NCBI GenBank assembly: GCA_977016875.1
Contig: CDRNST010000257.1
Coordinates: forward strand, 62,001-126,000
DNA length: 64,000 nucleotides
Direction: 5' to 3'
Source: Pavona decussata
Lineage: Eukaryota
This document shows, in pieces, positions 4,997 through 62,029 of the stretch. Position 1 is the stretch's first letter; every line of letters starts with the position of its first letter. The position numbers and the translations under genes are program-made. The notes under the pieces are model-generated. The model made no database searches, was not told the origin of the DNA, and saw only the letters and a program-made list of their open reading frames with translations.

Positions 4997-6710
4997 GGCT
5001 TCTCAAATGATCAATAATTCTTGGAGAAATTCAAGGCTAAAATTGGCAAAATTTTATGGTAATTAGGATCACAAATCCAAACCACGATCACAGTAGTGAT
5101 TTTCTTTGTTTTCTCTTGATGAATTATTAATGAATTTGGGAATTGCTCTTTCCAATCAAGAGAGGCAATCCAATCCTAACTGCAAATACTCATAGTATTC
5201 GCTGCTCCACTAAGATGAGTAAAGGCAGCTGGGCTTGTGTAATAAAACTATACATTATAGTTTCAATTTGGCTATGTACTTTTACTCAGAAGTCGAACAG
5301 TGGTTCAGCAACCAGACAGCACAGCAGCACAGGGGGATGATAATCAAGAGGTACAACAATGACTTCCTTTCTTATGCTTTGCTGTCACTAATGCAATCAA
5401 GCTTAAATGAATGGGTAGAATTTCATGTACAAGAGAAATTGGCAAATTATCAAGCACTTTCACATATTGAGTGCAGTATTTTTGTTCCTTATAAATTTCA
5501 GACAGTACATGAAGAGCATAATTAAAGAGCTTCAAGGACAAGTCCTGGTTACCGCTTCAGACAAGAATATTTGAGACAATTTGACACAGAGATGAGGTTG
5601 GGGGAAGAAGCACAAGACATTGCGCTTGTAGGTTTATCTTTCACTTTCTTAACTGCTGTTATCTTCATTTGTGTGCAATACGCTATAATCAAGTAGATAG
5701 TTGCTGACATCAGTGAGTAATCAGTGATGTAGCAAAGAGTTATAAATGCCCCTTGCAATTTTTTGGTGTTCAGTTATTCATTATTCATTATCGGCAGAAC
5801 TAAATTACCTGTTGATTGTGGATTGATACCATTGATCATTGAATAGTTATTCCTCGAAAGACAATAAAGTCAAACGCAATCATCAGATGCATGCATCAGT
5901 TATTTTGCATGTTGTAAAGTTATAAGTAGCCATCAATGTTGACATTCCAGATGTTTCTTTTCTTTAGGACACCGATCAAGGTGGGGGAGAGAGTGCCCTT
6001 TATATGGGAAGTCCAGGTAAGCATACACTCTACCCAAATCATAACCAAAAGTTTGAAACAGCAAATTAGAAAAATGTTTTATTCCTTTACCCCCTCTTTT
6101 ATTTTCATTCAGTCAGGTTGAGAAAGTTGTGACTGATATATTTACTTCTTTTTGAAGGGAACTTTTGACATTTTTCTCGACCTTGTGTTTTGCACAATTT
6201 GCGTTGCCATTATGTGACACTTGTTTTTATGTAATTTTCTTGGAGCGGAAATGTTTTTTGTCCCCATGTGGGAGACGACTTTCCCGTGCGCTTGCGTGAT
6301 TTCCCGCTCAACCAGCCCTGACAGAAATAAGGGACTGCTCAAAGTCTATGAGCGTCAGCCGGTTTGAAGAAAGTGGAGCAACATCACCTTTCATAGAAAT
6401 AAGGAAAGTTATACATTTCAAACATCTAAAAACTAACTTTTTTATGGCCAGGGAAGAATGTGACTGAAGACTGAAAACGAGTTCATCATTTGATTGACAA
6501 GGATCTGGCACTAGGAAAACAAAATGAGAAAACAAAACAAAGCAAGGAAAACTTTAATTCCATATTGAAATTTTAGTTAATCCAAGTTGATCCAACCTGG
6601 ACTAGGTGATCTGGTCTGGTCCCATCCTATCCAAGTAGATCTGGTCTGATTTTTTTACCTGCCTGAAGGAAATTTAAATTTCTGATGCCATTTTGCCAAA
6701 ATTAATATTT

Positions 6711-30852: not shown

Positions 30853-31949
30853 ATGGCGGACGAACACACAAGCGATGGCGATGTGGAGGAGAATGAAATA
30901 CAAGAGAAAGCACAAGAGAAAACGTTTAGTATCGAAGAAAAGAAAATGTTGCTCAGTATTGTAGAAGAGAACAGATGCCTTTGGGATAGCGCATCCCCCG
31001 ATGCCTATTAGCATCATCACTGGAGACAACCCCCGACTGCATTAAAAAGAGTCTCCACAGCCTCAGGACATCAATGGTAAGAGAGGTAAAGAGAAGTAAG
31101 GGGAATAGTCAGTTCAAATCGAGATGGAATTTGTACGAATCCATGTTGTTTATGAGGGAAGAAATACTGAGGTCGCTCGAAAGTAAAGAGGAAGAAAAGT
31201 GGACAGACGAGGACATTGAAATGCTGATAAACTTCTACAAGGAGAACCCCCTTTTGTGGGATATTAGTTTACAAGAGTACAGAAGCCGAGATTCTAGAAG
31301 GCTAGCATTTAAGAAGCTTAGTGAGTTGCTGAATAAGACAGAAGAAGAGTGTAAGAAGCAGTGGCATAGCCTCAGAGTGCAGTTCAATAAAAACTGCACA
31401 CGTCACGAGTCAAGTAAGAAGAGCGGCTCTGGTACTGATGAGGTGTTTACTCCATCATGGAAGTTTTATGACAGCATGTTGTTTACAAAAGAAAGCCTGG
31501 AAGTTGATGCATCCAGCAGTACTCTAAGTGACTCTTTTAATGACAGTGAGCCAGTGCCAAAAAGGAGGAAGAATATTTCAGTGAAAACAAATGATACTGT
31601 GGATCAATCTGAAAAGGCTAAATTGGACATGTATCAAGCTGCAATTGATGTTCTGAAGGCTCCATCCTCAACTTCTAATGAGGGTCCCTCAGGAAGTGGA
31701 GAAATGGAGGTTTTCGGCAGGCTAGTGGCTGAAACACTATCACGATTTGACGCTAAGCAGAGGGCATTTGCTAAAAAGAGGATCAATGATGTGCTCTTTG
31801 ACATTGAAATGGGTGGCTCACTCCATGGGTCATCTTCATTATCTGTTATACATCCAAACTATTCAAGTACTCCGAGTTCCTTTCATCAAGATTCATCCCA
31901 GCACATGAGCAGTGGTTTACATTCAATGTCTTTTGCATCTCCTTTCTGA
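30853..31949 (+). CDS. Harbinger MADF (Myb/SANT-like) DNA-binding protein; 5' part disrupted
   Basis: ORF 31074-31949 has WTDEDIEMLINFYKENPLLWD..EECKKQWHSLR..SKKSGSG..PSWKFYDSMLF and a BESS-like tail (KKRINDVLFDIE). A remnant of a further MADF repeat starts at ATG 30853. Confidence 0.85.
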
Positions 31950-33775: not shown

Positions 33776-35196
33776 TCAAACAATGCCACATTGTCGCCAT
33801 TGCCAGGGCACAACTCCCTCATTATTAAAGTACTCCTTGAACTCATCCCTTATCTGCTTTGCTCTCATCCCATAATTATTGCTGCACTGGGGATTAAAAT
33901 CCTCCCAAACTGGAGCAAAAGACTGAGCTCTCCATGTTCCAGGTGTTACATCACCAGTAGCTTCATCTTCTGAGTCAACAAGGGTACTTGATACATCAGA
34001 CCTGTAGAAAAGTACAAATAAAATGCTTTTTACAAATGGGATCACTGTGAACAGAATGTTATGGCTCTCCCTCCTTTGTGGTTGTTGAGGTAATGTCTAT
34101 ACAGGATTCCTATGGGAGTCTCTAGTTAAGCCTTACCGTAGTAGATTATGGAGGGTAAGTGCTGCCAAGACTATTTCCTTCACTTTTCCAGGCCCAAGTA
34201 ACATTGGGGAACAAAAGATTCTCCATCTGCTAACGAGGATTCCAAATCCATTTTCAGAAATCCTTCTCATCCGAGATAACCTGTAATTAAAAATCCTCTC
34301 CTCAACAGTCATCTTACTTTGAGGATATGGCTTCATAAGATAGTCTGTTAAGCCAAAGGCATCATCCCCAGTTAGCACATATGGTACAGGCATGGCCCTG
34401 ACTGGGAGTGGTTTAGGATCTGGTAGGTTCAGTGGATTATCTTCAGAACTAAGTAAACTTTTGAGATCACTTCGTTGCCATACGCCACCATCTGATGCAC
34501 GCCCATTGGCCCCCACATCTGCCCAAAGGCATTCATAGTCACCTCCAAAGATAGCCATCAAAATTATACTGTTATGACCTTTGTAGTCATAATATCTTGA
34601 CCAAGAATTTTGAGGCTGTTGGATCAAGACTCTCTTCCCATCCAAAGCTCCTATTCCGTTTGGAAAGTTCCAACGACTTTCAAAGCGTTGAGCAACAGAT
34701 ATCCACTCTTCTTGGGTGGATGGTGTCTTCAAGTACCTTGGCCCTAGAATATCAAATATTGCTTGGCATGTCTCGACAACAACGGAGGAAATGCAAGTAC
34801 GACTTATACGAAAGCTGTACTCAAGCGACTTGAATGTTTCCCCAGTGGCCAGATATCTAAGAGTCACTGCTATTCTTTCATCAGGCCTTATGCTTTCACG
34901 CATCAAGGTGTCTTTCTTTTCAATTGCATATCCCACACTGTCCACGAGGAATCGAAATTTCTGCCCATTTACTCGAAAGAACTCTGTGTATGCAACTTCG
35001 TCTTCAAGTTCAAGTTCTTTGACCAACTGATGGTAAACTCCTTTGGTTCTTCTTCTTTTTATCCAGTCCCTTGTCCAGACTACTCTGTTTCTTTTCCGAG
35101 CATCCTTTTTTTGCCTTCTTCTTCAAGTCCTTCAAACATGTCTACTAATATTAAGACTGCCAACGCTCGTCTCTTCTTATCTCGTGAGGCGGCCAT
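33776..35196 (-). CDS. Harbinger DDE transposase (HARBI1-like nuclease), 2 exons, N-terminal frameshift
   Basis: ERIAVTLRYLATG, FPNGIGALDGKRV (D), VLTGDDAF (D), FNYRLSRMRRISENGFG (E), LHNLL. Phase-consistent GT-AG intron at 34136-34002. Frameshift at ~35090. Confidence 0.9.
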
Positions 35197-35772: not shown

Positions 35773-37348
35773 GCTAGAATACCATCCATATCTTGGACTT
35801 CATCCAAAGTAGACAGAACTTCCTGAACTTGTTGTAAGGGGTATTCACTTGACTGAAATTCATTTTCTGGAACCACCACATTGTTGTTTGTTTGTAAACC
35901 TGGCACAGGCCCTTCTTCGTCGATACCACAATTGGGTAGATCAGGTTGGTTATTGCCTTGCAATACATCCTGCACAGCAAAATAAACGTGCTTCTGTAGT
36001 TACATTCAGTTGTCACAGGGTGGTGATTCCAAGAGCATATTAATTCTTGTAGTGCTTTATTAATCAGTGGAAGGTACACCACATGCACGGACCAAAGATG
36101 GATATCACTTAGTGGATTGAACAGTCCATTTCTCTCTAGATACGAGAAAATGTTTACAAACCGACTGCAGACAATTCTATTAACTTCACGCCAAAGACGC
36201 TCAAAACGTTGGTTGTGGACTGATGTCCCAGTTATTATGCATCCTGTGTTCAAACCACACCTTTCGAGCATAACACGTGCTACATCTACATTTTCCATTC
36301 CCATGTCTGTTCTTACATGAGAGAGAAGGTTGTACTGCTGAACAGCATTAAGAAATGACTGAAGAACTGTATCTGCTTTGTTGTTACTGGAAGCATGCAA
36401 GAAAACTATCAAACGTGAATACCCATCAATTCTGCCATGTATGACAATCCTGTAGGGCTCTATCAACTTGTGATTCCCATCCAAATACCTGTATTTGAAC
36501 AATGTAACATATAGTCCAAATTCAAAAAAGGTGGTGGCCTGGGGGCACAACAGCCTTAAATTTCTAAATTTTTCCAAGTCCCCAAGCGATCCCATAGTTT
36601 AGTGCGCACCAACTCTCGACCCAGGCTGCCACTCTTTTTCAAAGTGGCCATTGCAAAATGCATATGTTAGTCTCGACTTAAGTGAATCCCTAATTATTTT
36701 ATTTTTCTGTTATTTGCCCTGGCCTTGAATAGCGCTTTGCTACCTGAGGGGGAAATCTTTCTGTAAACTTTTTTCAATCCTACCCCCACTAAAACCAAGA
36801 AAACCAAAAAATTACCCTCCAAGAACTGAATCGTTTTCAAAAATTACTCCCACCCCTGGAAAAGGTTGTATTTAATATTTTATTATGCCCCCCAGGGGAC
36901 ATAATAAGCGAACAGTTCCTAACTGAAAGTTGTGAGATGAGAGGGAATGTTGGTCTTGGCAGAAAAGAAACGACCTTGCATTTAAAGGGGTAAGAAAGAG
37001 TGCTTACCATAAAGCATTCGGACAGGGGACCTTGTAGGTTCTTCTCACAACACGCCTGGAATTTCGTATGGTCGAACTGATTGGGTCAACCCTTATCATG
37101 GAGTCACGAATTCTTTCCTGCTGTAGTCTAAGACCACGAGCTCTTGTAGCTCCAAGCACCATATCAAGACCTGCTTGAGGTGTAGCGTGAAGAACACCGG
37201 CAACAAGGGTATCCAGTTCATCGTCAGAAATGTGATCAAAATTTTCACCAACAGGCATGTCACATTCTCTTCTTCTTCGTAACGTAATAGGAGAAACTCC
37301 AAAATAACGTGCAATGTCTGCCCATCGAAAGCCTTCCTCTCTCATCAT
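35773..37348 (-). pseudogene. IS3/IS481-like (IS3EU-type) DDE transposase no. 2, spliced; C-terminus continues at 28805-28761
   Basis: Exon 1 carries an HTH (FRWADIARYFGVSPITLRRR..ISDDELD..RRTYKVPCPNALW|GT). Intron at ~37006-36489. Exon 2 has LDGNHKLI..IHGRIDGYSR (D), VRTDMGMEN (D), SVHNQRFERLWREV (E) and WNHHP. Frameshift at ~35985. Confidence 0.88.
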
Positions 37349-40478: not shown

Positions 40479-41496
40479 TACCCTGGTTCCTGAGGCCCGT
40501 TATCCAAATAAATGGGAGAATATAATCCTAATAAAAAAAACTCGGCAGTTTGAGGCACCCTGAGATGGGCCTCTGGTCACACGAACCGGGAACCTCATTT
40601 CTATGTGAGAAATCAGTTCAGGAATTGAACCGCGTTGTTGATTGGTTTGACAAAAGCAACAACAACTGTGATTGGATAGTTAAAACCGCAGCTTCCCGTG
40701 GGACTTAAAACCGTTTTTGTCGCGGAAAATCGGAGATTATGCGAACAAAACAACTACTATGGCAGCGAGCGAAATAGAAAGCGATTTCTCTTGTTCCTTT
40801 CAAAATGCAGTGCGATACGCGTTAGATTCCAAGTTTAAAGAAATTCAAAACCTGAAACCAGAAGAAGCGTTGTACAAATTTATCCAGCCGAATGATGTAT
40901 TTTTTTTAAATTTTTATTTAACAAACAACAACAATTTATTACAATATTAGTTACCCACAATTAGCAAGGGTTATTCGAGGTGGGAAGCATTGATAGGAGT
41001 TTGCTTTTTGGTCGCGGGTCGAGGGTCGAGGGTAACTAGTCAAGGGTCGAGGGTCGAAAAATTATTCAAAATTATTTTCAAATTATTTCTGAACTTTGTC
41101 AACTCAAAAGTTCGCAGACTCGTGTTTACTCGAGTTTCCCGTGCCTGTTTTTGCCGCATTTGGGTCATATTTTTGTTTGTCAAAAACTCACGTTTATACA
41201 TTCCCACGGACTCTCCGGCGTGCTGAGCATCAGAATTCGGCAAGCTAATTTTGGTTCAATTATCAGTTTTTCCCGGCCGCGAATTCGAATTACAGCAGAA
41301 TATTGAATATTTAGCGCCATTACTCGCATAGTTTTATTGTTGTGCATAGTTCACGCTTTAGTTCACACCATAGTTCGCATATCTCTATTGTTACCTTGGT
41401 TACCTGTTCGCTTCGCGAGTGAGTTAGTTTTGCATTTTGATTCTCGGTTGAATAAACGTGGACGCTCGTTCGAAGTTTCTGCCTTAATCATTGGCG

Positions 41497-41507
41497 TGGT
41501 GGCAGCG
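41497..41507 (+). promoter_or_regulatory. Primer-binding site, probably tRNA-Leu
   Basis: TGGTGGCAGCG lies directly after the 5' LTR and is complementary to a ...CGCUGCCACCA tRNA 3' end. Confidence 0.75.
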
Positions 41508-41599
41508 TTTCGGTTCAACGGACCCACAAAAGACGTCAAAGTGTTCTTTTCGCCCCTTCGATCGATTGTGTCTGAATTTCGTGAGTTTAACTCTTCAAG

Positions 41600-44500
41600 A
41601 TGACTTCCCATAGAGCGCCGAAACAGTGGTCGCTAACCTCGAACGAAACAATTACTTCAATTGAGGCTTGGGAGAACAACCTTAAGTATATTTTGTCCCT
41701 CGATCCTAATTTTGCAGATTTTCTTACCGATGGTTCGTCCTGGGGTAAGAAAACGAATGCTTCGCCTCTTCGCGGTTTCTCGAATGATCCTGAATCTGTT
41801 CCTGCGACCCGAAGAAGAACTGCAGCTCAGAAGGTGACACATCTGGAAATGATGCTTGGCCAAATAGCGAACTATTCTCCAATTATTTCTAGGAATTCCA
41901 TCGTTAAGAACTCAACTTCTATAAACGGCGTTTGGCAAGCGATCCGACAGCATTATGGCCTTCAGTCCACTGTTTCACGGTTCTTAGATCTCGCGTATAT
42001 TTCTCTGAAACCTGAGCAACGTCCAGAGGATTTGTTCCAAAGCTTGATGGCCTTCGTTGAGGATAATCTTCTCACAACTTCTAGCGGTATTACTCATCAC
42101 GGTGAGGCTCCTGTAACCGACGAGGAACTTTCGCCTTCTCTAGAAAATTTTATCGTGTTAACTTGGCTTCGTTTGCTACATCCAAACCTTCCTCGGCTTG
42201 TTAAACAGCGCTATGGTACTGAGTTACGTTGCAGAACTCTCGCTTCCATGAAACCGGAAATTTCCCAAGCACTTGATTCACTTCTCGACGAGCTTCACAC
42301 CAGCGATGAATCTAAAATCCTCCGCTCTGCTTCTCAAACGGAACATCGCGCATCGTTTGCTTTTACCCGTCGCAGAGGCCCTCCCAAACCGCGACCATTG
42401 AAGGTGTGCCCTCTGTGCCAACAGGCTGGACGCCCCAATTCTCACTCTCACTTCTTGAGTAATTGCAAGTTCTTGCCTGAGTCTGACCGCCTTTTCATGT
42501 CTAGAATTCGACAAGTGGCTGGCCTTGACGTCGATATAAACAGTTGTGATTGTTTTCAGAATTCCGACCCAGTGGAGTCTCCAGTTCCCCTAGACACACC
42601 CGTGATGCAGAATTGTGGCCCTGGTGTCCTTCCTACAATGGAATCAACTGTTTCCCGACGTGTTAATATATCCCAGTCTCCGTTTCTTCACGCCTTTTTT
42701 CGTCACCATCCTTTACGTTTAACTATTGATACTGGTGCTGAAACGAACATGATGAGGGCTTCTCTAGCCAAACACATCGTTGCAAAGGTCACTAAAAGTA
42801 CCCAGACCGCCCTACAAGCTGATGGTCGTACTCCGTTGTCCGTGGTTGGTGAGACCCGTCTCCAGCTGGTTCGCCGTGGCAGATCTGTTATGCTGGAGGC
42901 CCTCGTTGTAGAGGACTTAGACGTGGATATACTTGCTGGGACTCCCATCATGACTTCAAATGACATAGCTGTTCGCCCTGCCAAACATGAGATCATTATT
43001 GCTGGGTGTGATGTAGCATCTTATGATTCTTCTCAGATCTCTCAAGCCCATCACGCTGTTAGAGCCTGTCACCTTCTACGTGCTCCTTGCGCCAACACTA
43101 CTGTCTGGCCCGGTGAGTTTCTTGAAGTCGACGCCCCTTCTGAGTTTCTTAAAGATTCTCCACTCGCCATCGAGCCTCGTACTGACTCAGTCTCATCTAA
43201 TCACTGTAAACCTTCACACGCATGGCCACAACCCGTCATTGTCCAAGCTGTCGGGGGTAAACTGAGACTTCTCAATGACACTGATGAGCCCTTACTGATT
43301 CGTAAGAATGATCATTTCTGCCAAGCGCGCCTAACCGTTCCTGATCCTGCTTCAGATCCTTCTCCGGTCGAAACTTACCCGGCACCGAGTATGCTAACGG
43401 CACCCCTCCTTACGCCTGCCGAGTCAGTGTCAGTAGATCCTGATGGTTTATTGTCCTCCTCTCAGAAAGCTTCTTTCAACTCTCTTCTGAAGGAATTTCA
43501 AATTGTCTTCGATCCTCGCATCCCTGGTTATAACGGAACAGCTGGTCCCATCGAAGGAATTGTGAACATGGGTCCTGTAGAGCCTCCCCAGCGCAAAGGC
43601 CGCATTCCACAGTACTCGCGAGATCAACTTGATCTGCTCCAGAGCAAGTTCGATGAACTAGAGGCTCAAGGTGTCTTCCGCCGCCCCGAAGACCTGAAGG
43701 TTGTTGTCGAGTACCTCAACCCTTCTTTCCTGGTGAAAAAGAAAAATGGTGGCTTTCGCCTGGTCACAGCCTTTACCGATGTAGGCCGTTACAGCAAACC
43801 TCAACCTCCGCTAATGCCGGACGTAGATTCCACCCTTCTAAAGATTGCCTGCTGGAAGTACATCGTGGTCTCCCATCTATCCAAGGCTTTTTATCAAATT
43901 CATTTTTCAAAGGATTCAATGAAGTATTGCGGCGTAGTTACCCCTTTTAAAGGGGTCCGCGTCTACACACGTTGTGCCCTGGGTATCCCTGGTTCCGAGA
44001 CAGCCTTAGAAGAGTTGATGTGCCATGTCCTTGGCGACCTCCTACAAGAAGGGTGCGTTGCTAAGATAGCCGACGACCTTTACTGCGGCGGGGATACTCC
44101 TCAAGAGCTCCTCATGAACTGGCGGAAGGTCCTTTCCGCTTTAGACCGCTGTAATCTGCGCCTTTCCCCCGAAAAGACCGTCGTTTGTCCTGCCTCCACC
44201 ACCATTCTCGGTTGGATATGGTGCCAGGGCTCTATCCGTGCTTCACATATCGTGTAGCTGTTCTAGCGTCGTGTGAGCCTCCCAAGAATGTTCGCGGTCT
44301 CCGCTCCTTTGTTGGTTCCTATAAAATGCTAGGACGAGTCTTGACTGGCTGCGCTAAGTACCTCGCTCCTCTTGAGTCTCTTGCGGCTGGCCGCCAATCT
44401 CAGGACACAGTGACCTGGTCTGATGAGCTCCTTGTATGTTTCCGCTCTTGCCAAGAGGTGCTTACTTCCAACAAATCCATCACCCTGCCAAAGCCTGAGG

Positions 44501-46621
44501 ATCAGCTATGGATCATAACCGACGGTTCCGTCAAGATGAGTGGAGTTGGCGCCACCCTCTATGTTCTTCGCAACCAGAAACTGCATCTCGCCGGCTTCTT
44601 CAGTGCTAAGTTCAAAAAACATCAAGCCTCCTGGTTGCCCTGTGAAATAGAGGCTCTGTCTATTGCTGCCGCTGTCAAGCATTTTGCTCCTTACATAATC
44701 CAAGCCAAGCCGAAGTCTTATGTCCTAACTGACAGCAAGCCTTGTGTACAAGCCTTCGATAAGTTATGCCAGGGTCAGTTTTCTTCCAGCCCTCGTGTGA
44801 CGTCTTTCTTATCAGCAGTTAGTCGTTACCAAGTCTCACTGCTCCACTTAGCTGGCTCTGCGAACCACCCTTCTGATTTCGCCAGTCGAAACGCCCCTGC
44901 CTGTGATGTCCCCTGTTGCCAGATTTGTTCATTCGTGTCAGAAGCTGAGGACTTGGCTGTTCGCCCTATTTCTGTTCAAGACGTACTGTCCGGACAGGCC
45001 TCTCTGCCCTTTACAAGTCGTGCCGCCTGGCTTCAAACTCAATTAGAGTGTCCGGATCTCAGACGAGTTCACTCTCATCTTGAGCAAGGTACTCGTCCCT
45101 CAAAGAAATTGACAAACATCAAGGACGTCAAGCGTTACCTGAACTCAGTCTCCATTTCTCGTGACGGTCTCCTTGTTGTTAGACAAGATGAACCTTTTTC
45201 TCCGACAAGAGAGTGTATAGTCATCCCTCGCTGTCATAGATGGCTTTCTCACCGCCTTACATGTGAAACTGGACCATCCTTCGCGCCACCAGATGAAGCT
45301 GGTTACCCAGCGTTACTTCTTCGCGTTGGACCTTGACAAAGCCCTGGACCGGTGCTCCCAGTGTTGCCACCTGAGCTCTTCCCTGAAAAAAGTTCCCTCC
45401 AGCCTCGTTGAGCAGTCTACCTCTGATCCTCCTGACGGTGTTGGTATATCCTTCGCCGCGGACATCATAAAGCGCTACCGTCAGTTGATACTTGTCGTCC
45501 GCGAGACTACAACCTCCTTCACAGCCACCTGTTTATTGGATGATGAGCGGCGCGAATCAATTCGTAACGGTCTTCTCCGCTTATGCCTTGAGCTGCGTCC
45601 CCTGGCTGGTCCCCCTCCCGTCGTAAGAGTAGATCCCGCTCCTGGCTTTTCCGCATTGTCAAGCGATGAAACTCTTTGGCAATATGGTCTTGCATTGGAG
45701 GTCAGGCGTATCAAGAACCCCAATAAGAACCCTGTGGCTGAAAAGGGCATTGCCGAACTTGGGGACGAACTTCTACGCATTTGTCCAGGGGGTGGCCCAA
45801 TCTCCCCCCTTTCCTTGGCTGTGGCGACCGCTAATCTCAATACCCGTATCCGCAACAGAGGATTGTCTGCCCGAGAGATGTGGCTTCAGCGCGACCAGTT
45901 CACTAACTGGCAGATTCCTGTAACGGATCTCCAGCTTCTCAGAGAGTAGCACTCCTCACGCCTCAGAAACCACCCAGTTAGCGAGAGATCCAAGGCTCCT
46001 GGGCGCAGTCCTCCCACTTCACCGTCTGTTGAAGTAGGCGATTACGTTTAAATTACCTCTGACGGCTCCAAGAATCGTGCTCGTGATCGATATCTCGTGG
46101 TTTCTGTTGAGGGCCTGTGGTGTAATGTGCGGAAGTTTACCGGTTCTCAGTTGCGTTCTACCTCTTATCGCGTCAAACGGTCTGAGTGTTATCGCGTTCC
46201 TGAGCACGTTGACCCCTCGTTCAACCTCTCCCGTCGTTACAACGCCGATCCCTATTGTGAAGATGTCGCCGTGGAACCTCGTGATGAATGCTTTAATGAG
46301 GAAACCAATCCTGTTCCTGTACCTCCGCCCCCTCCTAGCCCGTTTGTCCCTGTGGTTCCTGTCGAGCTCGCTACACCTCCAGATCCTCAAGCAGCTGACA
46401 CTTGTTCAGATTCCGAGCTTTCTCCAGCTCCGGAGGGAAACGCTCCCCACTTCGCTACGGCTGGTCCTCTTGCAGATCGAAGAGACTCTCTTACTCCACC
46501 CCTGTCAGACGATTTTAGTGTTCCAGTCTCCGAACAAACCTCCTCCTCTGCTAGTTCCGGTCCACGCAGGTCCAGCCGTTCAACTCGCCGCCCCGCTTAT
46601 CTTAGTGACTATGTAACTTAG
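41600..46621 (+). pseudogene. gag-pol (PR-RT-RNaseH-IN), broken by two frameshifts and a stop
   Basis: Gag Zn knuckle CPLC..H..C; protease LTIDTGAETN; RT LNPSFLVKK..FRLV and KIADDLY; RNase H ITDGS..CEIEAL..TDSKP..SDFASR; integrase H..H..CC, FAADII, VRVDP, NPVAE. Breaks at ~44245, ~45230 and TAG at ~45947. Confidence 0.92.
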
Positions 46622-47244
46622 TTGTGAACTGCGTAATTAACTTCCGTTTTTGTTTGTCTCCTTAAGCTGTGCTACTTCGCCAGTGCGCTGAGGATTTTAC
46701 CCATTGCACGACTGTCATTTTTCCTGTAGTTTAGCTTCGCTTTGCTTTGTTGTTCCTTTTTTTTCTTCATTTGTAAGCGAGAGGAAGAAGAAGTCACGCC
46801 ATTACTCGCATAGTTTTATTGTTGTGCATAGTTCATGCTTTAGTTCACACCGTAGTTCGCATATCTCTATTGTTACCTTGGTTACCTGTTCGCTTCGCGA
46901 GTGGGTTAGTTTTGCATTTTGATTCTCGGTTGAATAAACGTGAACGCTCGTTCAAAGTTTCTGCCTTAATCATTGGCGTAGAGCAGAAACCCCTAACGTT
47001 TCAGTCGCTCATGAAAAGGTTAGACAGATAAAGCCCTGGATTTCAGAGGATATTCTTCAGATTCTAATAGCTTTTTGTGCCCACAAGATTTGAATGTAGC
47101 GGGGCAGCCACATTGTCTGGGCGTGTTGCTTTGATTGACAGCACCAAATGCAGTTTCCTGCTGTCAAAACCCCTGTCTCGTCGTTCCAGCTTTACTTGCT
47201 CAAATACCGGGACTCATCTTCTTGTTCTGTTTGTTATCGTGGCT

Positions 47245-49752
47245 ATGGAATCATTTCGCAGTCGATTGAAACAGAAAGGCTCTATTGTCTCCTTCAATCC
47301 AAAAGGAGATGGAAGCTGCTTTTTTTCAGCAGCTGCACACCAGCTGAAACAAGACGGTGCGTGCTTAAAGGAGGCGACCTTCGAGTATCTATTAAGTCAT
47401 CGTTTTGATGTAAGTATTTTCATTGTTAGTCATTACGAGCAAAGAAATAGATAGGAAAGAATAACGTAACGTCAGTTACAAAAGCGCAAGTCAGAAAGGT
47501 TGTAGCTAGCTTTTTGCTGTACTTTGCATTGTTCGCGTTTTATGCTTTATTGATTACGAACTCGACAAAAGTTGCCTGTCAGTGATTAAACGTTATTACA
47601 CTGGTCTTACCTAACTACATGACACTCAGGTGAGGCAAACTAGTCTGACCAGAGTGCAGGGTGTGGAGTAAAAGTTGAATACGGAGCCCCCATTAGAAGA
47701 CTTGAATAAGAGCAAAGGAAACGCAAAATGACAAAGCGGGGTGCCAGTAAAAGCTGAATAATACTACCGACCCGATGTAGGTGGATTTGAATACGAACTC
47801 TTTCCGTACTCGTTTTACTTTTATATCCCAGACCGTTGGCCGTTCAATTACGCCTCGCTTTCTACAGACAAATTGAATAAAGAACTAAAAGAGTCGCAAT
47901 TGAGAAACCCATGAAAAAAGGAACAACAAATGGCGGACATGACGTGAAATGTTTTGCGCTGCTTCCAGACGGGAAACCACTTACTATAATGTACTTTATC
48001 AGCTCATCAGTCAAATATCAAGAAATAAATATTAGTTCGACAAGCTATTCCCCTCGCTTAATCAAAAATTTAAATATCAACAGCATGCGGGGAACGACCG
48101 TCTTGGGTTCGTCTGCGAGGAGGACTTTGCAGACAAGAAAAAGCCCATTCAATGGGAAGAGGCCATCGTAAAATTACAAGACGAATTTGCGACCAACATG
48201 GTAATCCAAGCATTCTCGGATGTGATGCATCAGGAAATCATTGTACTCGCTGTACACGGGGTAAGACGATTGTTAATTAAAAACAAGAATACCGTCAAGA
48301 TAAGACAATTTGTCTCCACACACATTTTCTGAATGAATGTATAGTTCAAAAGGTTTTTCACTTATATAGAACATATTAAAGAATATGTTAGTCACATTTA
48401 TTCACGTAATTCGCGAAATTAAAGCCCCGGCCAAACGGACTTGCAAGTAGCCCCATTTTGGACGCGTTTCAAAAAAGCTATTTCAGTGCAACCTTGCAGT
48501 CGCGCTAAAGAGACCAACTTGCGTTGCGTGGTCAAATGGTGAAAAACTTGCGTCTACTTGTGTGTGGATTTTTAGCTCCATTAAAGTGCAAGAAAGTCAT
48601 CGCAAGTCTTCCCAAGTACACGCAAGCAGGCGCTTAACGCGCCGCGAAAATTTCGTGTAACAAGAAGCCCTTTACAAGCAACCTCGTTCCCTGGGTCTCT
48701 CTTTTGCCTTGTAAGTGGCTCTTTGTGACATCATCATTGACGTCACAGTCTATCTACCACACCATCCATTAAATGAAAAAAATGCCACTTGGGCTTTCTG
48801 TGCCCCTGTGATGTCATCACGACGTCACACCTCACTCCACCACCCAATATATATGGAATAAAATTATGTGAAAAATACATTATGCGCATGCCTTGACCTG
48901 CTGCCTGGTCTTCCTGTGACTCCACCGCCTGGGTATCTTGTGCTCCTGTGAAGTCAACTTAAATATGCCTTGGCTTGCCACTTGGGCTTCCTGTAACTCC
49001 AGAAACATGTCTTGGCTTGCCCGGGCCAAGAGCTGACGACGACGACCACGACCATTTACCAAGAATACAGGGTAATTTATGAAGTAATGCCTGACGGGCC
49101 ACTTAATAAGGCATTAAAAAGTATTTTATTATTTACAGGGAGAGGAGGATTGTATAAGAACAGTGAGGCCAAGCTCAGGGATATGTTTTGGCACAATATT
49201 TTTGGGGCATACTGGCGATGGTGACCATTATGTGGCTATTGTCCCTACAAATACAGTAAATAGATGTTTCTAATGTTTCGAATGTTCCTGAAGAATACCT
49301 TGGGCTGATACAAAACATATACCATACCATATCATATCCATAACCAGGGGTGACTTGTCTGATCGGAGGGGGAGTGAAAATAATATGCCATGCTAACGAG
49401 TTGACGCAAGCACGATACACCTTTTTTACAGGGTACCGGCAGTTATGCTGATGCCACAAAATTGCCAGCCAGTACCTCAGATGATAATTTAGTAGTTGTC
49501 GAGAGGAAGACGGCGGTTTCGAAAAAAGAGCGGTTATCACCAAAGAAGTCTCAAGGGAATGGTGCCTTTAATCAACACTCCTGGAAAACGGTCTGTCCAT
49601 TAGATTAAACTATAAATTTCGTTATATCGCAGTCATTTAACGAGGCCGGGGAGCACCCCTGTGCACTGAGGATTCCCCACAGGATTTCAACAGTGAAGCC
49701 GGGGAACCTTATGAGGGTTGGGTTATTATGGAACGCACTATAGCGGAGTTTC
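47245..49752 (+). pseudogene. Spliced OTU deubiquitinase domain inside the MuDR
   Basis: Exon 47245-47409 (FNPKGDGSCFFSAAAHQL..|GTAAGT), exon ~48003-48260 (WEEAIVKL..NMVIQAFSDVMHQEIIVL|GTAAG) and exon ~49683-49752 with a candidate catalytic HY. Confidence 0.65.
48420..48632. mobile_element. Harbinger-type MITE remnant
   Basis: TAAAGCCCCGGCCAAACG start with internal CTTGCG/CGCAAG repeats. The second end is missing. Confidence 0.4.
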
Positions 49753-51537
49753 TAGGCAGTACCTAAAGTTCTTATTTAAGAGTTTTACAAATAAAATTGA
49801 ACAATTGGTAAACGTGCCTTGCATAATTCTGTAAAATCCTGTTGATCCTTTTTGATCATTTTTTTTTTCAGACACAAAGGAAGAGAAGGCGGCAAATTCC
49901 TGAAATGGAATGGTGGGGCGACGAGGAATTCAACCCTGGAGTTCCTGTTTGGAGGGGCGAGCCACAGGTAGGGAGAGTTATTTCAATACTGTTAAGAGTA
50001 ATGATCTTGACATCCATCTTGATTCTACCCAGTAAAGATTTGGACCCTGGCTAGAGTATGGAATGGGAAAAGAATGCTTTTTATTTCCATTGATGTCAGA
50101 AATTTGAGAAAATTGCTTTTTTTTATCCCCAGTTTCATCTTTTTTGTAAAGATGATCGGGAAGAAATCATTACCATTTCAGAGGATTCAGCCGACGAAGA
50201 TAGCACGCCAAAGGAATCGAAACGACTTGAATGCGGCTAAAAGGATTAAAAGACGGCGTAATTCATCGGTACGTTTCTCGTGGCATGACATTAAATAGTA
50301 AAGTAGCGATAAAGATACAAAAATACTGAGAACGATAATAATGCAACTGTCTTGTTTTCCCTATTATAGAAAGAAGACAAGGAGAAAGATGTTGATTTGA
50401 TAGATCTGACCTTGTCGTTTGACAAGCTTAGCTCTGCTGAAAACACACCAACAAAAACAGAGCAGAATCGTCGTCCTTCAAATGCGAAAGCCAAGGATCT
50501 ATTCAATGACAAATCAAGGTAAAAGGAAGTACAATTATTAATGCTAAGAGGGTGAAGGAAAAAAATTCGAGTTTAAATCGCCATGATTTAACATGACTTG
50601 CAATCTAAGGCAAAGTTGGGCATTCAGAACTAACTTTGGTTGCAAGAAAAGGCGCTAGAAGTAAAATAGCAATTAACTCTGATCTGTTTATGACTTAAAG
50701 CATTTAAGATTGTTATCGTCAGCGTTATTGTTTCAGTACCACGGTATGCCCTGATGATCCCTTAAAAAAAGAACCAGGGAGTGATTCAGACGAAGAATTG
50801 CTACGACCTGCCTTCAGGTAAAACTGTTGCAAATTAAAATTTCAGCCAGCACATTAATCCTGTTGTGAGAGTATCTCATAGGAGGAGGAGGGGTAGAGGG
50901 CGAGTACCGGGCCTCTACCTTTTTGTAATTTGCTGGCTAAACGAGGCAACAATGTTGCGGAAATAGTTTGCGCTAGCCCATGTTTCCACGATGTGTGGAA
51001 TATTGGAAAGTAACATGAGAAAAGGGTGAGATTCCCCTTTAGCCCCCTCCACCTGCTGTCCCCCTCCCGCTGCGCTTAACCCTGAAAATGCCGAATTTGT
51101 GCACGGAAAACCACATTTTGGGCCTCAATTAGCAGTTTTCGGTCGGTATGGTGTCTATTTGTAGCGAAATGGGTAAAAATGCTATTGGCACAAAAAAGAT
51201 AAATTTTCCTTTAATCAAGAGTGAAATAGAGTTATGTCTACCCAGGGGGCTCATAGAACGGAATAGACTTGTTAAAGTAACAATTTCCTCAGCTGCCTTA
51301 GACTGGATATGAAAGTCAGAGTTGTTGATTGCAGCTTTTTGGAATACCTAGCCCCTGCAATCCAGTTCATTTAGATGGATTGTTTTAGTTTACTGGGTCA
51401 TGGATGGTCATCATACAAAGTCTATAACTTTTTTCCCATAGTACCTCAGCAGTCTCAGATGACGATCGCAAAGACGAAAGTTCACTTCAAGCTTTAATTA
51501 AAAGCAGGTATAAAAATTTAAATCTGTTATATGCAGT

Positions 51538-53457
51538 GTGCGAAGGTATCTTAGTTATCATAATAAATCAGTGACTGTTTACCACATTGGTAATCACACA
51601 TGCCCTGTCAAAGACAGCCTCCGAAAAAAGGACATCACGAGCATCGAACAGATTATACGGAATCAACCAAAAATCAAGCCCTTCGAGGTACAGTCGGCGT
51701 TCGTCATGTTCGCATTTCAACAGCAAATGGATTGGAACGCTGTCGAAAGAGAGGCCAGTGCTGTATTGGATAAGAAACGCGTATCCAACATGAAACAGAA
51801 ACTGAAGAAGGATATAGAGCCGTTTGGCCACAACTTTGAGGCGGTTGTCCCTTTTAAAGAGTATGCAGATAAAAAAGACCCCTTATATGTGTACAAAATT
51901 AATGACAGGAGGGGAAACCCGAACATGCCATCCTTTGTCTTCAAGACGAGCACGACGAAAATGAAAATGGCATTAAACATGGACAAAAATGGGGACCATT
52001 TTCTGAGCAAAGAATTTTCTTTTTTTGACGGAAAAAGGAAACCGTGCAATGGGTTTATCACACTAACAGCCAGTGTGTATCATCCCTTGCTGCGGAAGCA
52101 GATACCACTGGCTACAATGGAGGCAGAAACCGAGGACACCGTAAACGTCGAACTTTTCTGGCGTTTATTTAATGAAGCCTTCAGGAAAATGGCCGGTTCG
52201 GATCGTGCTAAATTTAACCCAATAGGTTGGTGTAGCGACATGGCAGGCGCTAATTTAGCAGGAATTTCAAAGGTTTTTGGGGATGACGCCGAAATCAAAT
52301 CGTGTGAGTTTCACTTCAAAGACCACAGAAACAAAAAAGCTCAAAAACTTGACAGTGAGAGCAGTGACGAGTTCAAACAACTGTGTGACAGGCTGTTACT
52401 ATGCACAACCGTTGCTGGATACCAGGCCGCCAAATCTCATATGGACTTATTTATGGGGGCCGATGATAGCAGGGCTTTCCTGACAAGCTGGGTATCGTGG
52501 TGGCATGAGTGCCGTCGGTTCATTTTCCGTGCATTCACCAACCCCAGTGCACCGCAAATAAACCAGGCTGAAGTGATTCACGCTGGTTGGGCTCACTGAG
52601 ACCACCAAAATTTGTCTCTAATGGACGTGTGTCAAGCAGACACACGAGACGCTTTGTTGCTTGATGTGGAGACCAAAGCATACTTGACCGGCGCTACACC
52701 AGGAGGAAAAGGTCCTTCCTTTGCTGACCGAGCACGTAAGAAACATGAAGCAGAAGTTCGGAGGGCACAGTCAACAGGGAAGGAGATGTTTTCCTCTTCA
52801 GAAGGCATGCTCATTGATGCAGGTTCCTCACACAAACCACCTTCCGGAAAAAGAAGGCAACTAAATCAAAGGGTCCAGCTTTACCATCGCCACAGGTAAC
52901 CAATCAAAGCGTAAATCCTCTGCCTACTTGGCAGACGAGCTACCCTGCTACCCACAGCGCTGCCAAAATGATGCAGCCGCGGATGCAGACGTTACCTCAA
53001 CCCCCTGTGTTTCCTCAACCGCCCGCGTATCCTCAACTACCTTTTCCTCAGCTGCATCCCCCTCTACCGTCTTTCACTCAATCACCAATGCCCTGTGCCG
53101 GCTTACAGCCCTCATGGAATTCTAGCATGTCACCAAGTAACTACGAGCTGGTCATCATGCCTCCAACAGTAAGAAAATGCTATGGGTGTGGGGACGACGA
53201 TAAATACAAAACTCCACCTTGTAATATTATAAAACATGTAGACAAAAGGGTCACCGGAAAAGATTCTACAACAGGTCAGCCAATTACACATGCAGGACTA
53301 TTCAAACACATATTATCATCCTATAGCGACCCATATAACCAGAAAAAATCCACTTTTTTCTGGCCAAGTTTACCTCAGGTATGAGCTTTACACATCATTG
53401 GATAATGCCCAGCGCAATTACATCAACACGCTTCATAGCCTAAATATTTTAAAGTAA
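51538..53457 (+). pseudogene. MULE DDE transposase with a Pro/Gln-rich linker and C-terminal Cys/His finger
   Basis: GNHTC; FFDG (D); WCSDMA (D); CEFH (CxxH); NQAEVIH (E). TGA at 52597 likely arose from CGA. Later VRKCYGC...YYH..H. Short upstream exons at 49870-51510. Confidence 0.85.
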
Positions 53458-54155
53458 CCTTTTAATTGAATGGGCGCAAGTGCCGCTTGCAACATAGGTA
53501 ATGCTTCTCGGGCAGTACACCACCACAGCCCAAGCTTTATTTCTCTCAAAGCATATTAGGAGTACCCAATTAAATTCTTAAAATGAATTGACCTTGTTTA
53601 GTAACGCTTATTGTTATGCTTATTCAGTTGCGAGGTATTTTTTCCGGAACAATCGAAAATGTGGTGGGTCTCGGATATATACCCCGTAACCTGGATATCT
53701 TTGAATAGGACAATGTTTTGATCTTTTCCCTTACTCCTCTTTACTTCGCTTTTAAATTGCCGGAGACAGGTTGAGAGACTTTGAACCAATGGCTTGAATT
53801 ACGTGTTAGTGCTTGCTATAGTTGTTTGGGTGAATGCGGCATTTGATATTTGTCTTTATTATATTGTTATCGTCGAGTTTTCCATGTTTTTGTTTTACAG
53901 GCGCGAATGCGTATAATCGCCCTGACCCAAGTCTCACATAGGATTATACTAGCCATTTTACTACACGGCTCCTGCTGCCATAACCTGTTATACGGTTGGA
54001 AGGTCTATAAAAAGGGCATATATCTATAGTAAATGTTTCTGTTGGTTACTGATCTGCGCCGTGATTTATGACTAATAATAAATATCAAATGACTCATTGA
54101 GAACTATACAGAAAACTTGTGTCAATTATTTTATTAGTGCAACGTAAAAACAAAA

Positions 54156-54237
54156 TAGCCTGTGTATACATCTGTTCCTGGACTCAGTATTAGTATTATT
54201 TGTATAACTGAGGCCAGGAACGGATGTACACAGGCTA
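54156..54237. mobile_element. 82-bp AcademH-type mini-MITE
   Basis: TAGCCTGTGTA..CATC.GTTCCTGG / CCAGGAACGGATGTACACAGGCTA. Flanked on both sides by AAACAAAA. Confidence 0.75.
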
Positions 54238-56001
54238 AAACAAAAAGGGAAAAAATCCGATAGTAATCGATAGCAATCGATGAATCAGTGGTCATCAATT
54301 TCCGATGAATCCATATGAATCGAATTCACATCGTTTTATCTTTATCGATTTCTATTAATTGCCGATACCAATCGATATCAATCTTTGATTGTTATCCATT
54401 GATATCGATATTGATATTGATATTGATATTGAGGGTTATTCTGTCAAATCTTTTCATAAGCAAATGAATCATTAGACAAAAAAAACCACTGGGTTTCTGC
54501 TCTGAATAAACAATATTGGTTTAAAACTTGAGTGTTACAACGATACGTAACAGCATCTTCAGCGTTCGCGTTACCTTCTTCTATAATTCGAATTCGCGGC
54601 CCGGAAAAAAAATAATATAACCGTAAGAATAGAAAGGGCCAGATTCTGATGCTCAGCACGACGGAGAGTCCGTGGGAATGTAACGTGAGTTTTTGACAAA
54701 CAAAAATATGACCCAAATGAGGCAAAAACAGGTACCGGAAACTCGAGCCTGTGAACTTTTGAGTTGACGAAGTTCAGAAATAATTTGAAAATAATTTTGA
54801 ATAATTTTTCGACCCTCGACCATTTACCCTCGACTAGTTACCCTCGACCCTCGACCAAAAGGCAAACTCATTGATAGTTGTTTACCTGCTTAAAAGGAAA
54901 AGAAAATTAACAACACAAAATAGATGCATTATACAAAAAAAAAAGGATTAAAAAGGAAAATAAATGAATAGATAAATCACCTTAATGACTAATTATTATT
55001 TAGAAAGTTAAGTGCAAGCTAACTAAGTAGTGACATAAGATTGATACAAGTAACAGCGTTCATATCAACATACACCTTCTCAGTCTCCAAAACCTTTAAG
55101 AGCAATTCATGCAGTTTACGCTTGAAAAGTGTTTTACATAACTCACGTAGTTGAGGAGGAATTTTATTCCAAATTCTCGTTCCAATTCTAGAAAAGGACA
55201 GCAGCTGTTTATTGAGTCTTGACATGAAAATTACCTGACGCTGAAAATCTAGTGTAGTGAGAATGGATCTGGTCAGAACGAGTGAACAGTTCAGAGATTT
55301 TTGGAGGAGCACAATGGCTAAAAATATCACGCATTATAGTAACAATATGTTTAAAATAGAGCATATTCAGAGGCAAAAGACCGGAGCTGACAAACAGAGG
55401 GATGGCGTGAGTTCTACTATCAGAAAAGTACATCAGACGAAGGACTCGTTTTTGCAGCAGAAGAATTTTGTTTAGATGAGAAGCAGAAGCTTGTCCCCAG
55501 GCAGCTAATCCATAAGAGATGTAAGGTTCAATCAGGGAACAATAGATTCTTAAAAGGGTACTTGTAGGCAGAAAATGCCTAAGCCTCAAAATGATCCCAA
55601 CATCTTGACTTATTTTCGATGAAATATAGTCTATGTGGTATCACCAGGAGAGGTTATTGTCAACCAGAATACCTAAATATTTTACTTAGTTTCTATGTTC
55701 GAGAGAAGTCATTTTGTTGAAGTCGTTATCATATAATATTAAGTTTACGTCGTAATGAACCTTGCGTTGATCAGGGTAAAAAAATAACAAAATTGGATTT
55801 ACCAGTGTTTAGCGATAGTTTATTTGCGTTTAATTCAATTCAATTCAGCATTAACAACTAGCTCAAGTGATCTACGATTTTTGTCTGCATGTAAAAGATT
55901 AGTATCATCAGCGAATAAGTAAAAGTTGAGTTTATGAGAAGCTTGATAAATATCATTTATATAAATGAAGAAAAGTAATGGCCCTAGGACAGAGCCTTGA
56001 G

Positions 56002-57375
56002 TAGCCTGCGAACAGCAGACGTATTTCTGGTTGTACCTCCGAAAAATAATGTCTATGATCTCGAGCTCCGAAACAATTTCCGTGACGTCATTTCTTTTCT
56101 TCTTTACTCGACCAATGAAATTAAGTGATCATCATTTGGTCCTTTTCCCTTTAAGGGAAATGGGGCCTTGAAATTAAGTGATAGAAAGATGTTATTGATA
56201 ACACGTGCGAAATCGCAAGGAGCAACAACTGTAAGTAGCCATGAGTGCGGAAACGCCGAAAAAAGTTACCTCGGCCGAAGGAGATTGTTTTTCGTGTAAG
56301 GATAAAATACCCAGTCTGAAGGGGAAAGTGAAGATCTTTGGCAAGAGTGAACTGGAGATTGGTGCAGTAATTCATCGCTCACTTGGAGTCGATTTGTCTG
56401 TTTACATCGGCAGCGAGAACCTCCTAATGTGTCGCTTGTGTTATAACATGTTGAATGCCTACAGCAAGGCCTCAAAAAATCAACCAGATCATCGATGGTA
56501 TCAAGAAGAAATTTGAAAATAACGGACCTCTCAGTATCAAAAGATTATCGAAAGATTCAACAAAACCGACTCAAAAATTAAAATCGAACCTCAGGCTTCA
56601 AACGGACTTTATAAGACCAGGACAATGGCGACAACACAGTAAATGATGTTTTCTGATGTTGATGTGCTTTTAACAAAACGTTTAAGTGATGATTTGAACC
56701 AGGATTCTGTAGCTTCTGTAATTTTCATCGCAAACGTGCCCGAATTTACTGCAAGTGATCGCTTTGAACAAACACGGAGTGTCTTCAAATTTTACATGCG
56801 TGCATGTTTGCACGCACACAAAAAAACTGAAAGGTTTTTGCCTCTAATAGGAAATTCATTGTTTATTTCAATAAAATGTTTTGTTGGAAAAGCTCTTTGC
56901 TGATTTTTGTGTCTGTGAATTCATATATGCGTTTGAGAAGCGACAGATGCATAGTCAAGGACAATTTGCATAAGCAGGCTGAAATCAACATGCCATGAAT
57001 TTTAGCAATTTTTGCGTTCAAGCGTGTTTTTCGGCAAATGATTACATGTGATAGGTAACCATATTATTTTACGTCAGAAAACATTTGTTTAATCATTCCA
57101 GTTTAATATGCAGTTAATTTTGGAAGCCAGCAATATTAATTTATCTACTGCGCATTTTAGTGAGTTAAACCGCTCTCCCCATCTTCCGCCATTTTGTTTT
57201 TCTCGCGGACATCGAGATCCCCACGTAAAGCCCATGCGTGTTCGCTCCACAAACAGAAGAGCCGAATTCTGATTGGTGAAGAACTATTGACGTCACGGAA
57301 ATCATTTCAGAGCTCGAGATCGTAGAAGTTATTTTCGGAGGTACGACTGGAAATACGTCTGCTGTCCGCAGGCTA
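56002..57375. mobile_element. Non-autonomous AcademH-type element with a Zn-finger ORF
   Basis: TIR TAGCCTGCG.ACAGCAGACGTATTTC / GAAATACGTCTGCTGT.CGCAGGCTA, with ~100-bp imperfect extension. Exact 9-bp TSD AGCCTTGAG (55993-56001, 57376-84) inside the LINE GVPQG motif. ORF 56241 has CFSC...CRLC. Confidence 0.9.
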
Positions 57376-61973: not shown

Positions 61974-62029
61974 CTGTGAATTGAAAACATACATATTATA
62001 TATGGTTAAAGATGTTAAAGAGGTCCCAC

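Follow-up and report, generated by a model that had tools for sequence, protein, structure and literature searches.

What kind of long terminal repeat (LTR) retrotransposon has LTRs that read CG...CG, three repeated bases at its borders and KIADD as a motif of its reverse transcriptase (RT)? The question is posed by an element of 5,664 bp on the plus strand of contig CDRNST010000257.1 (assembly GCA_977016875.1), within the 64,000-nucleotide stretch analysed here, hereafter the window (contig positions 62,001 to 126,000), from whose first letter the coordinates below are counted. Together with the flanking TAG trinucleotides the element spans 41312-46981. It is almost certainly an inactive LTR retrotransposon of the Troyka superfamily in a cnidarian genome, probably that of a coral, where it is lodged in an older DNA transposon with long terminal inverted repeats (TIRs), namely in the left arm of the latter. 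The group to which it belongs is already known, and its hallmarks are not new.

Termini of the element and of its relatives

Both LTRs are 182 bp long (41315-41496 and 46797-46978, plus strand, delimited from the sequence and by LTR-LTR comparison) and read CGCCA...TGGCG, a 5-bp terminal inverted repeat, with TAG on either side (41312-41314 and 46979-46981, plus strand, from the sequence and comparison with the other arm of the host transposon), all exactly as they had been read in the initial annotation of the window. The two LTRs differ by 5 mismatches (97.3% identity; BLAST E = 8e-86), all five of which are transitions and three of which lie at CpG. An AATAAA hexamer is present in the 5' LTR at 41451-41456, 40 bases ahead of the LTR end. 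A search of the 64-kb window for further copies of the element or solo LTRs found none.

Beyond the window, other copies were inspected for TG...CA ends or target-site duplications of 4-5 bp, a check that the initial annotation had proposed; six further insertions instead show CG...CG and 3 bp. Three of these belong to the same family, come from large contigs in two assemblies at ENA and carry CGCCA...TGGCG between duplicated AAG, AAG and TTA, respectively; one 5' LTR among them ends in TGGTG, a CpG transition, and all three copies are broken too. The other three are distant relatives with the same ends and 3-bp repeats, in the coral Porites lutea (TTG), the pearl oyster Pinctada imbricata (TAA) and the deep-sea eel Synaphobranchus kaupii (TTG). 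With the window copy included, 7 of 7 insertions are bordered by a 3-bp duplication, for which the chance expectation is ~1/64 each, and CG occupies 27 of the 28 LTR termini, bearing out the earlier contention that the CG ends are not a one-off mutation.

The RT of the window element shares 64-88% identity with proteins from Porites lutea, Mytilus, Pinctada and Synaphobranchus kaupii, and three of their loci have the Troyka hallmarks. The closest named protein, from Montipora foliosa, has an RT that is 86% identical. Named relatives come from corals, sea anemones, bivalves and fishes, which fits the published distribution of Troyka. The contig also belongs to ENA assembly ERZ25073751, and a host HLH gene of that assembly (L008:2112-2810) has a single named relative, from the stony coral Oculina patagonica, at 48% identity only, compared with 86% for the RT of the element and Montipora foliosa, a disparity that could reflect either an unsampled host lineage or horizontal transfer. 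Two Troyka-like gag-pol proteins, P0081 and P0101, are filed at NCBI under bacterial metagenome-assembled genomes, namely Candidatus Thiodiazotropha endolucinida (a clam symbiont) and a Deltaproteobacteria bin; they most likely represent host-animal DNA in the bins.

Affiliation with Troyka

The Troyka group dates to Kapitonov and Jurka (2008, Repbase Reports 8:510, as cited in PMC12440569); a recent survey of it covered 256 species and 586 LTRs (Kojima 2025, J Gen Virol 106:002143, PMC12440569). It is defined by LTRs that run 5'-CG...CG-3', CGCCA being present in 573 and TGGCG in 522 of 603, and by 3-bp duplications, which empty sites have confirmed for corals, mussels, sea urchins and fishes (PMC12440569). 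Published Troyka elements have LTRs of 100-400 bp, an internal part of 1,553-7,691 bp and a single gag-pol in the order finger, retropepsin, RT, RNase H and integrase, with a gag finger of the form CX2CX8-10HX4C; they are without a tether domain, GPF/Y motif or env, and are confined to aquatic animals (PMC12440569).

Each published feature that was open to test was found in the window element or its relatives: CGCCA, TGGCG, the 3-bp duplication, the sizes (182-bp LTRs and an internal part of 5,300 bp lie inside the published ranges), the domain order, the finger, and the lack of GPF/Y and of a tether. The likeness to Troyka (Kapitonov and Jurka 2008; Kojima 2025) thus covers the LTR ends, the duplication, LTR length, the order of gag-pol, the finger and the absence of GPF/Y and env. 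Corals, bivalves and fishes are the sources of the most similar proteins. No defining feature differs; the window copy is broken, and the Troyka catalogue comprises 589 families. The initial annotation had pointed to a little-studied, gypsy-like Troyka group with 3-bp duplications. The group was named correctly, whereas the breadth of the 2025 survey does not allow it to be called little-studied.

Several considerations weigh against the assignment. Membership rests on the hallmarks and on the 64-88% RT identity to proteins of Troyka-bearing species, and not on a formal tree; the aquatic-animal host criterion is only indirectly supported; end recognition and stagger are deduced from integration products; and, as regards the priming tRNA, ARAGORN gave one doubtful gene in seven loci and none in the window, the complementary stretch, once CCA is left off, being too short for scanning a collection.

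A different view concerns classification only, namely that Troyka is a divergent lineage inside Gypsy and not a separate superfamily, which we consider unlikely, if still worth taking seriously. Ty3 is the best match among solved structures, and the Repbase taxonomy places Troyka under Gypsy (PMC12440569). In the trees of Kojima (2025), on the other hand, Troyka takes the sister position to Gypsy + Retroviridae + Caulimoviridae + Loki-Odin, its inclusion being unsupported, and it is now proposed as a superfamily of its own instead of a gypsy-like group (PMC12440569).

By comparison, we see hardly any prospect that this is a normal Ty3/Gypsy (Metaviridae) element, with TG...CA ends that mutated in this one copy or with wrongly placed boundaries, a reading that we regard as already refuted. 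The window element does share with Ty3/Gypsy elements, such as yeast Ty3 (PDB 4ol8, 7q5b), the gypsy-like domain order, homologous RT and RNase H (E = 5.6e-23) and the lack of a tether, and among solved structures its RT-RNase H is closest to that of Ty3. However, Ty3/Gypsy elements have TG...CA ends, duplications of 4-6 bp, a CX2CX4HX4C finger and YxDD, none of which is present in the window element, and many of them carry a GPF/Y integrase module that the Troyka relatives are without, so that the finger spacing, the absence of GPF/Y and the absence of YxDD all set the element apart from Gypsy. All four termini of the window copy are CG, and CG recurs in the six other insertions, from four species. 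The initial annotation remarked that a single CpG deamination at each end separates CG...CG from TG...CA. This is arithmetically true, but the expected mutation leads from CG to TG or CA and not the reverse, and CG appears to have been kept rather than to be a mutated TG...CA. Finally, the boundaries of the element are set by the end of LTR identity and by the adjoining TGG of the primer-binding site.

Target-site duplication

The second arm of the host transposon is uninterrupted and offers a comparison for the insertion site. The left and right flanks of the retrotransposon were scanned separately against the reverse complement of this arm and were never joined; this was done piecewise, since a three-way MAFFT alignment that included the other arm put the short left end in the wrong place. 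On the left, the 16 flank bases next to the element fit best at 54517-54502 (13/16, with 10/16 in the next best register), and on the right the adjoining 14 bases fit at 54504-54491 (13/14). Since the left flank ends at position 54502 of the arm and the right flank starts at 54504, the flanks overlap on the uninterrupted arm by exactly 3 bases, which read CAG in the arm and TAG at the insertion.

The initial annotation had taken this arm to fix the duplication at 3 bp. The 3-base overlap is real, but the arm alone does not decide the matter: the base next to each LTR is T in the window copy (41497 and 46979), and therefore the window copy and the arm comparison by themselves fit a 182-bp LTR with a 3-bp duplication and a 183-bp LTR with a 2-bp duplication alike. 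The ambiguity is settled by the other copies, because their 3' flanks start, directly after ...TGGCG, with the A or T of the 3-bp repeat. A 183-bp LTR ending in T, with a duplication of AG only, for which the T after both LTRs and the equally good fit of the arm can be cited, has next to no chance of being correct, as three other family copies end their 3' LTR in ...TGGCG followed by the 3-bp repeat (AAG, AAG and TTA), TGGTGGCAGCG opens, in every lineage, with the T that adjoins the 5' LTR, and such a boundary would break the 5-bp inverted repeat CGCCA/TGGCG.

Gag-pol domains and decay

The internal part of the Troyka element contains a single broken gag-pol (41600-46621, plus strand), delineated with Pfam and by comparison with an intact relative. 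The reference for the breaks was P0121, an uninterrupted gag-pol of 1,675 residues that falls in the same 90% protein cluster and is found on four public contigs (L001-L004). Zinc finger, protease, RT, RNase H and integrase follow one another in the window copy in the same order as in P0121, all on the plus strand. A motif search placed a gag zinc finger of the Troyka type, CX2CX10HX4C, at 42407-42466, and no canonical CX2CX4HX4C finger was found in the window gag; among 34 long relatives, the Troyka type is present in 24 and the canonical type in none. The retropepsin (aspartyl protease) domain, at 42704-42943, is recognized by Pfam Asp_protease_2 with E = 2.4e-4 in the window copy, just under the Pfam cut-off, and with E = 1.3e-5, above the cut-off, in P0121. 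The RT (Pfam RVT_1, supported by alignment) occupies 43841-44215 and RNase H (Pfam RT_RNaseH_2 / RT_RNaseH) 44416-44763. Between the two there is no tether domain, P0121 aligning continuously with Ty3 RT-RNase H over ~390 residues. The space that would be available for env amounts to just 157 bases between the end of pol and the polypurine tract.

Although the window gag-pol is 98.6% identical in nucleotide sequence to the coding sequence of P0121, it differs from it by two frameshifting indels, one in-frame deletion and two premature stops, the three indels together losing 6 bases. Because of these frameshifts and premature stops the gag-pol of the window copy is dead, and the copy is no longer able to make the polyprotein. 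Over the whole element we counted 83 substitutions, of which 18 are CpG losses. The four contigs that carry the intact relative yielded no insertion flanks. One of them, L001, contains an exact 300-base repeat (77-376 and 5565-5864) that covers the LTR and the start of the internal part, and its layout, LTR-internal-LTR-internal, is that of a tandem or of a wrapped assembly.

Reverse transcriptase motif and priming sites

In motif C of the RT, gag-pol residues 822-826 read KIADD, with IADD encoded at 44066-44077. Related RTs nearly all have Tyr at the first position of YxDD. In the phmmer alignment of P0121 with Ty3 RT (PDB 4ol8; E = 5.6e-23), the I of IADD lies under the Y of YLDD. Across the 120 best relatives the same column is occupied by L in 67, I in 51 and V in 2, and by Y or F in none, whereas the A, D and D that follow are kept in 120, 119 and 120 of the 120, respectively. 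The KIADD noted in the initial annotation in place of YxDD is therefore present, but it is not special to this copy; the alignment points to an aliphatic [L/I]ADD as a trait of the group and not a lesion of the window copy.

The priming sites are similarly shared. Directly after the 5' LTR lies a primer-binding site of the TGG... type, TGGTGGCAGCG (41497-41507, plus strand; identified from the sequence and from relatives), the same 11 bases of which are present in the window family and in the Troyka elements of Porites and Pinctada, with one mismatch in the eel element (loci L009-L011). At the other end, the polypurine tract, a run of 15 purines at 46779-46793 on the plus strand, stands 3 bases before the 3' LTR. 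This gap (46794-46796 in the window) measures 3 bases in 4 of 4 lineages, reading TCA, TCA, ATG and TTG in the window element and at loci L009-L011.

Neither YxDD nor the primer-binding site is mentioned in the main text of Kojima 2025 (PMC12440569). Judging from the sequence comparisons, we think it rather probable that the aliphatic motif C, seen in 120 relatives, and the cross-phylum primer-binding site TGGTGGCAGCG with its 3-base polypurine gap, seen in four lineages, are group-wide Troyka traits absent from that text. If the aliphatic motif and TGGTGGCAGCG hold in all Troyka lineages, they would provide extra diagnostic characters, cheap to apply, and would hint that the replication machinery, and not the integrase alone, departs from that of other LTR elements.

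Integrase and the proposed integration mechanism

The integrase core was missed both by Pfam and by a sequence search of the PDB, and the failure of the Pfam core model to detect the Troyka integrase sets it apart from Ty3/Gypsy. Alignment, fold prediction and Foldseek nevertheless place N-terminal zinc-binding helices and a DD35E catalytic core at 45275-45877 (plus strand). When the unbroken window piece was aligned with 32 long relatives, the catalytic triad fell on the codons at 45461-45463 (D), 45632-45634 (D) and 45740-45742 (E), with spacings of 56 and 35 residues; the three residues are conserved in 33/33, 31/32 and 28/30 rows, respectively, and conserved His and Cys residues lie upstream of the core. 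No GPF/GPY was found after the catalytic Glu in any of the 32 aligned relatives. The predicted fold has a mean predicted local distance difference test (pLDDT) score of 71.8, exceeding 84 over most of the core, and in Foldseek the integrase piece matches the integrases of maedi-visna virus, HIV, SIV, BIV, FIV and foamy virus with probability 1.00 at 12-20% identity. The piece is therefore a DD35E integrase of the retroviral type, albeit a very divergent one. It resembles the retroviral enzymes of the maedi-visna, HIV-1 and prototype foamy virus intasomes in the predicted N-terminal helical domain, the RNase H-like core and DD35E; retroviral integrases are, however, only 12-20% identical to it, act on ...CA-3' ends and make duplications of 4-6 bp.

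Following the established cycle of LTR retrotransposons, an intact Troyka element of this kind would have RNA transcribed between its two LTRs, with the AATAAA as the likely polyadenylation signal. Minus-strand DNA synthesis would start from a host tRNA at the primer-binding site and plus-strand synthesis from the polypurine tract, after which the DD35E integrase would join the ...CG-3' DNA ends to target cuts staggered by 3 bases. In other LTR elements and retroviruses the ends are ...CA-3' and the stagger is 4-6 bases. As is done in the literature, we infer altered end recognition and an altered cut stagger of the integrase. The CG...CG ends themselves are a product of selection rather than TG...CA ends altered by mutation, because CG is kept in ~95% of the published families and at 27 of the 28 termini examined here.

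As a discovery the element carries little weight, since Troyka has been defined by its CG...CG ends and 3-bp duplications from 2008 onwards, and 256 species were surveyed in 2025. Of more practical value, standard LTR finders that demand TG...CA ends and 4-6-bp duplications miss or mis-delimit Troyka elements, and recognition of such an element from raw sequence is a useful check on annotation.

Host transposon and neighbourhood

The element that received the Troyka insertion spans 40997-54869 and is flanked by ATTGATAG on both sides. Its left arm runs from 40997 to 41314 and, after the interruption by the retrotransposon, resumes from 46982 to about 47028, while the uninterrupted right arm extends from about 54440 to 54869. 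The arms, ~320-430 bp long and roughly 90% complementary, start with GAG; the arm sequence begins with GAGTTTGC at 40997 and ends at 54869, and the right arm is ~58 bases longer than the left. The flanking ATTGATAG measures 8 bp, or 9 bp if the terminal C is counted, the MuDR/Mutator duplication being ~9 bp.

The initial annotation had labelled the host MuDR. The long TIRs agree with that label, but Pfam found no transposase domain in the five scanned open reading frames (ORFs) of at least 90 amino acids, out of seven listed between the arms, which leaves the label unverified. Matches between the arms were weak and below the cut-off, namely OTU (E = 0.0081), phlebovirus glycoprotein (E = 0.0017) and papillomavirus E1 (E = 0.038), the OTU protease match lying at 47077-47451. 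Judged by its arms and flanks, the host is a DNA transposon with long TIRs, possibly a Mutator-like one.

Upstream of the host lie further transposon genes, comprising a MADF/Myb-like ORF at 31074-31949, a DDE_Tnp_4 (Harbinger-type) transposase at 34133-35026 on the minus strand and an rva_4 ORF at 35774-36595, also on the minus strand. On the other side of the host, a pair of ~90-bp inverted repeats (56002-56090 and 57288-57375), 88-91% complementary and ~1.2 kb apart, may delimit a small non-autonomous DNA transposon.

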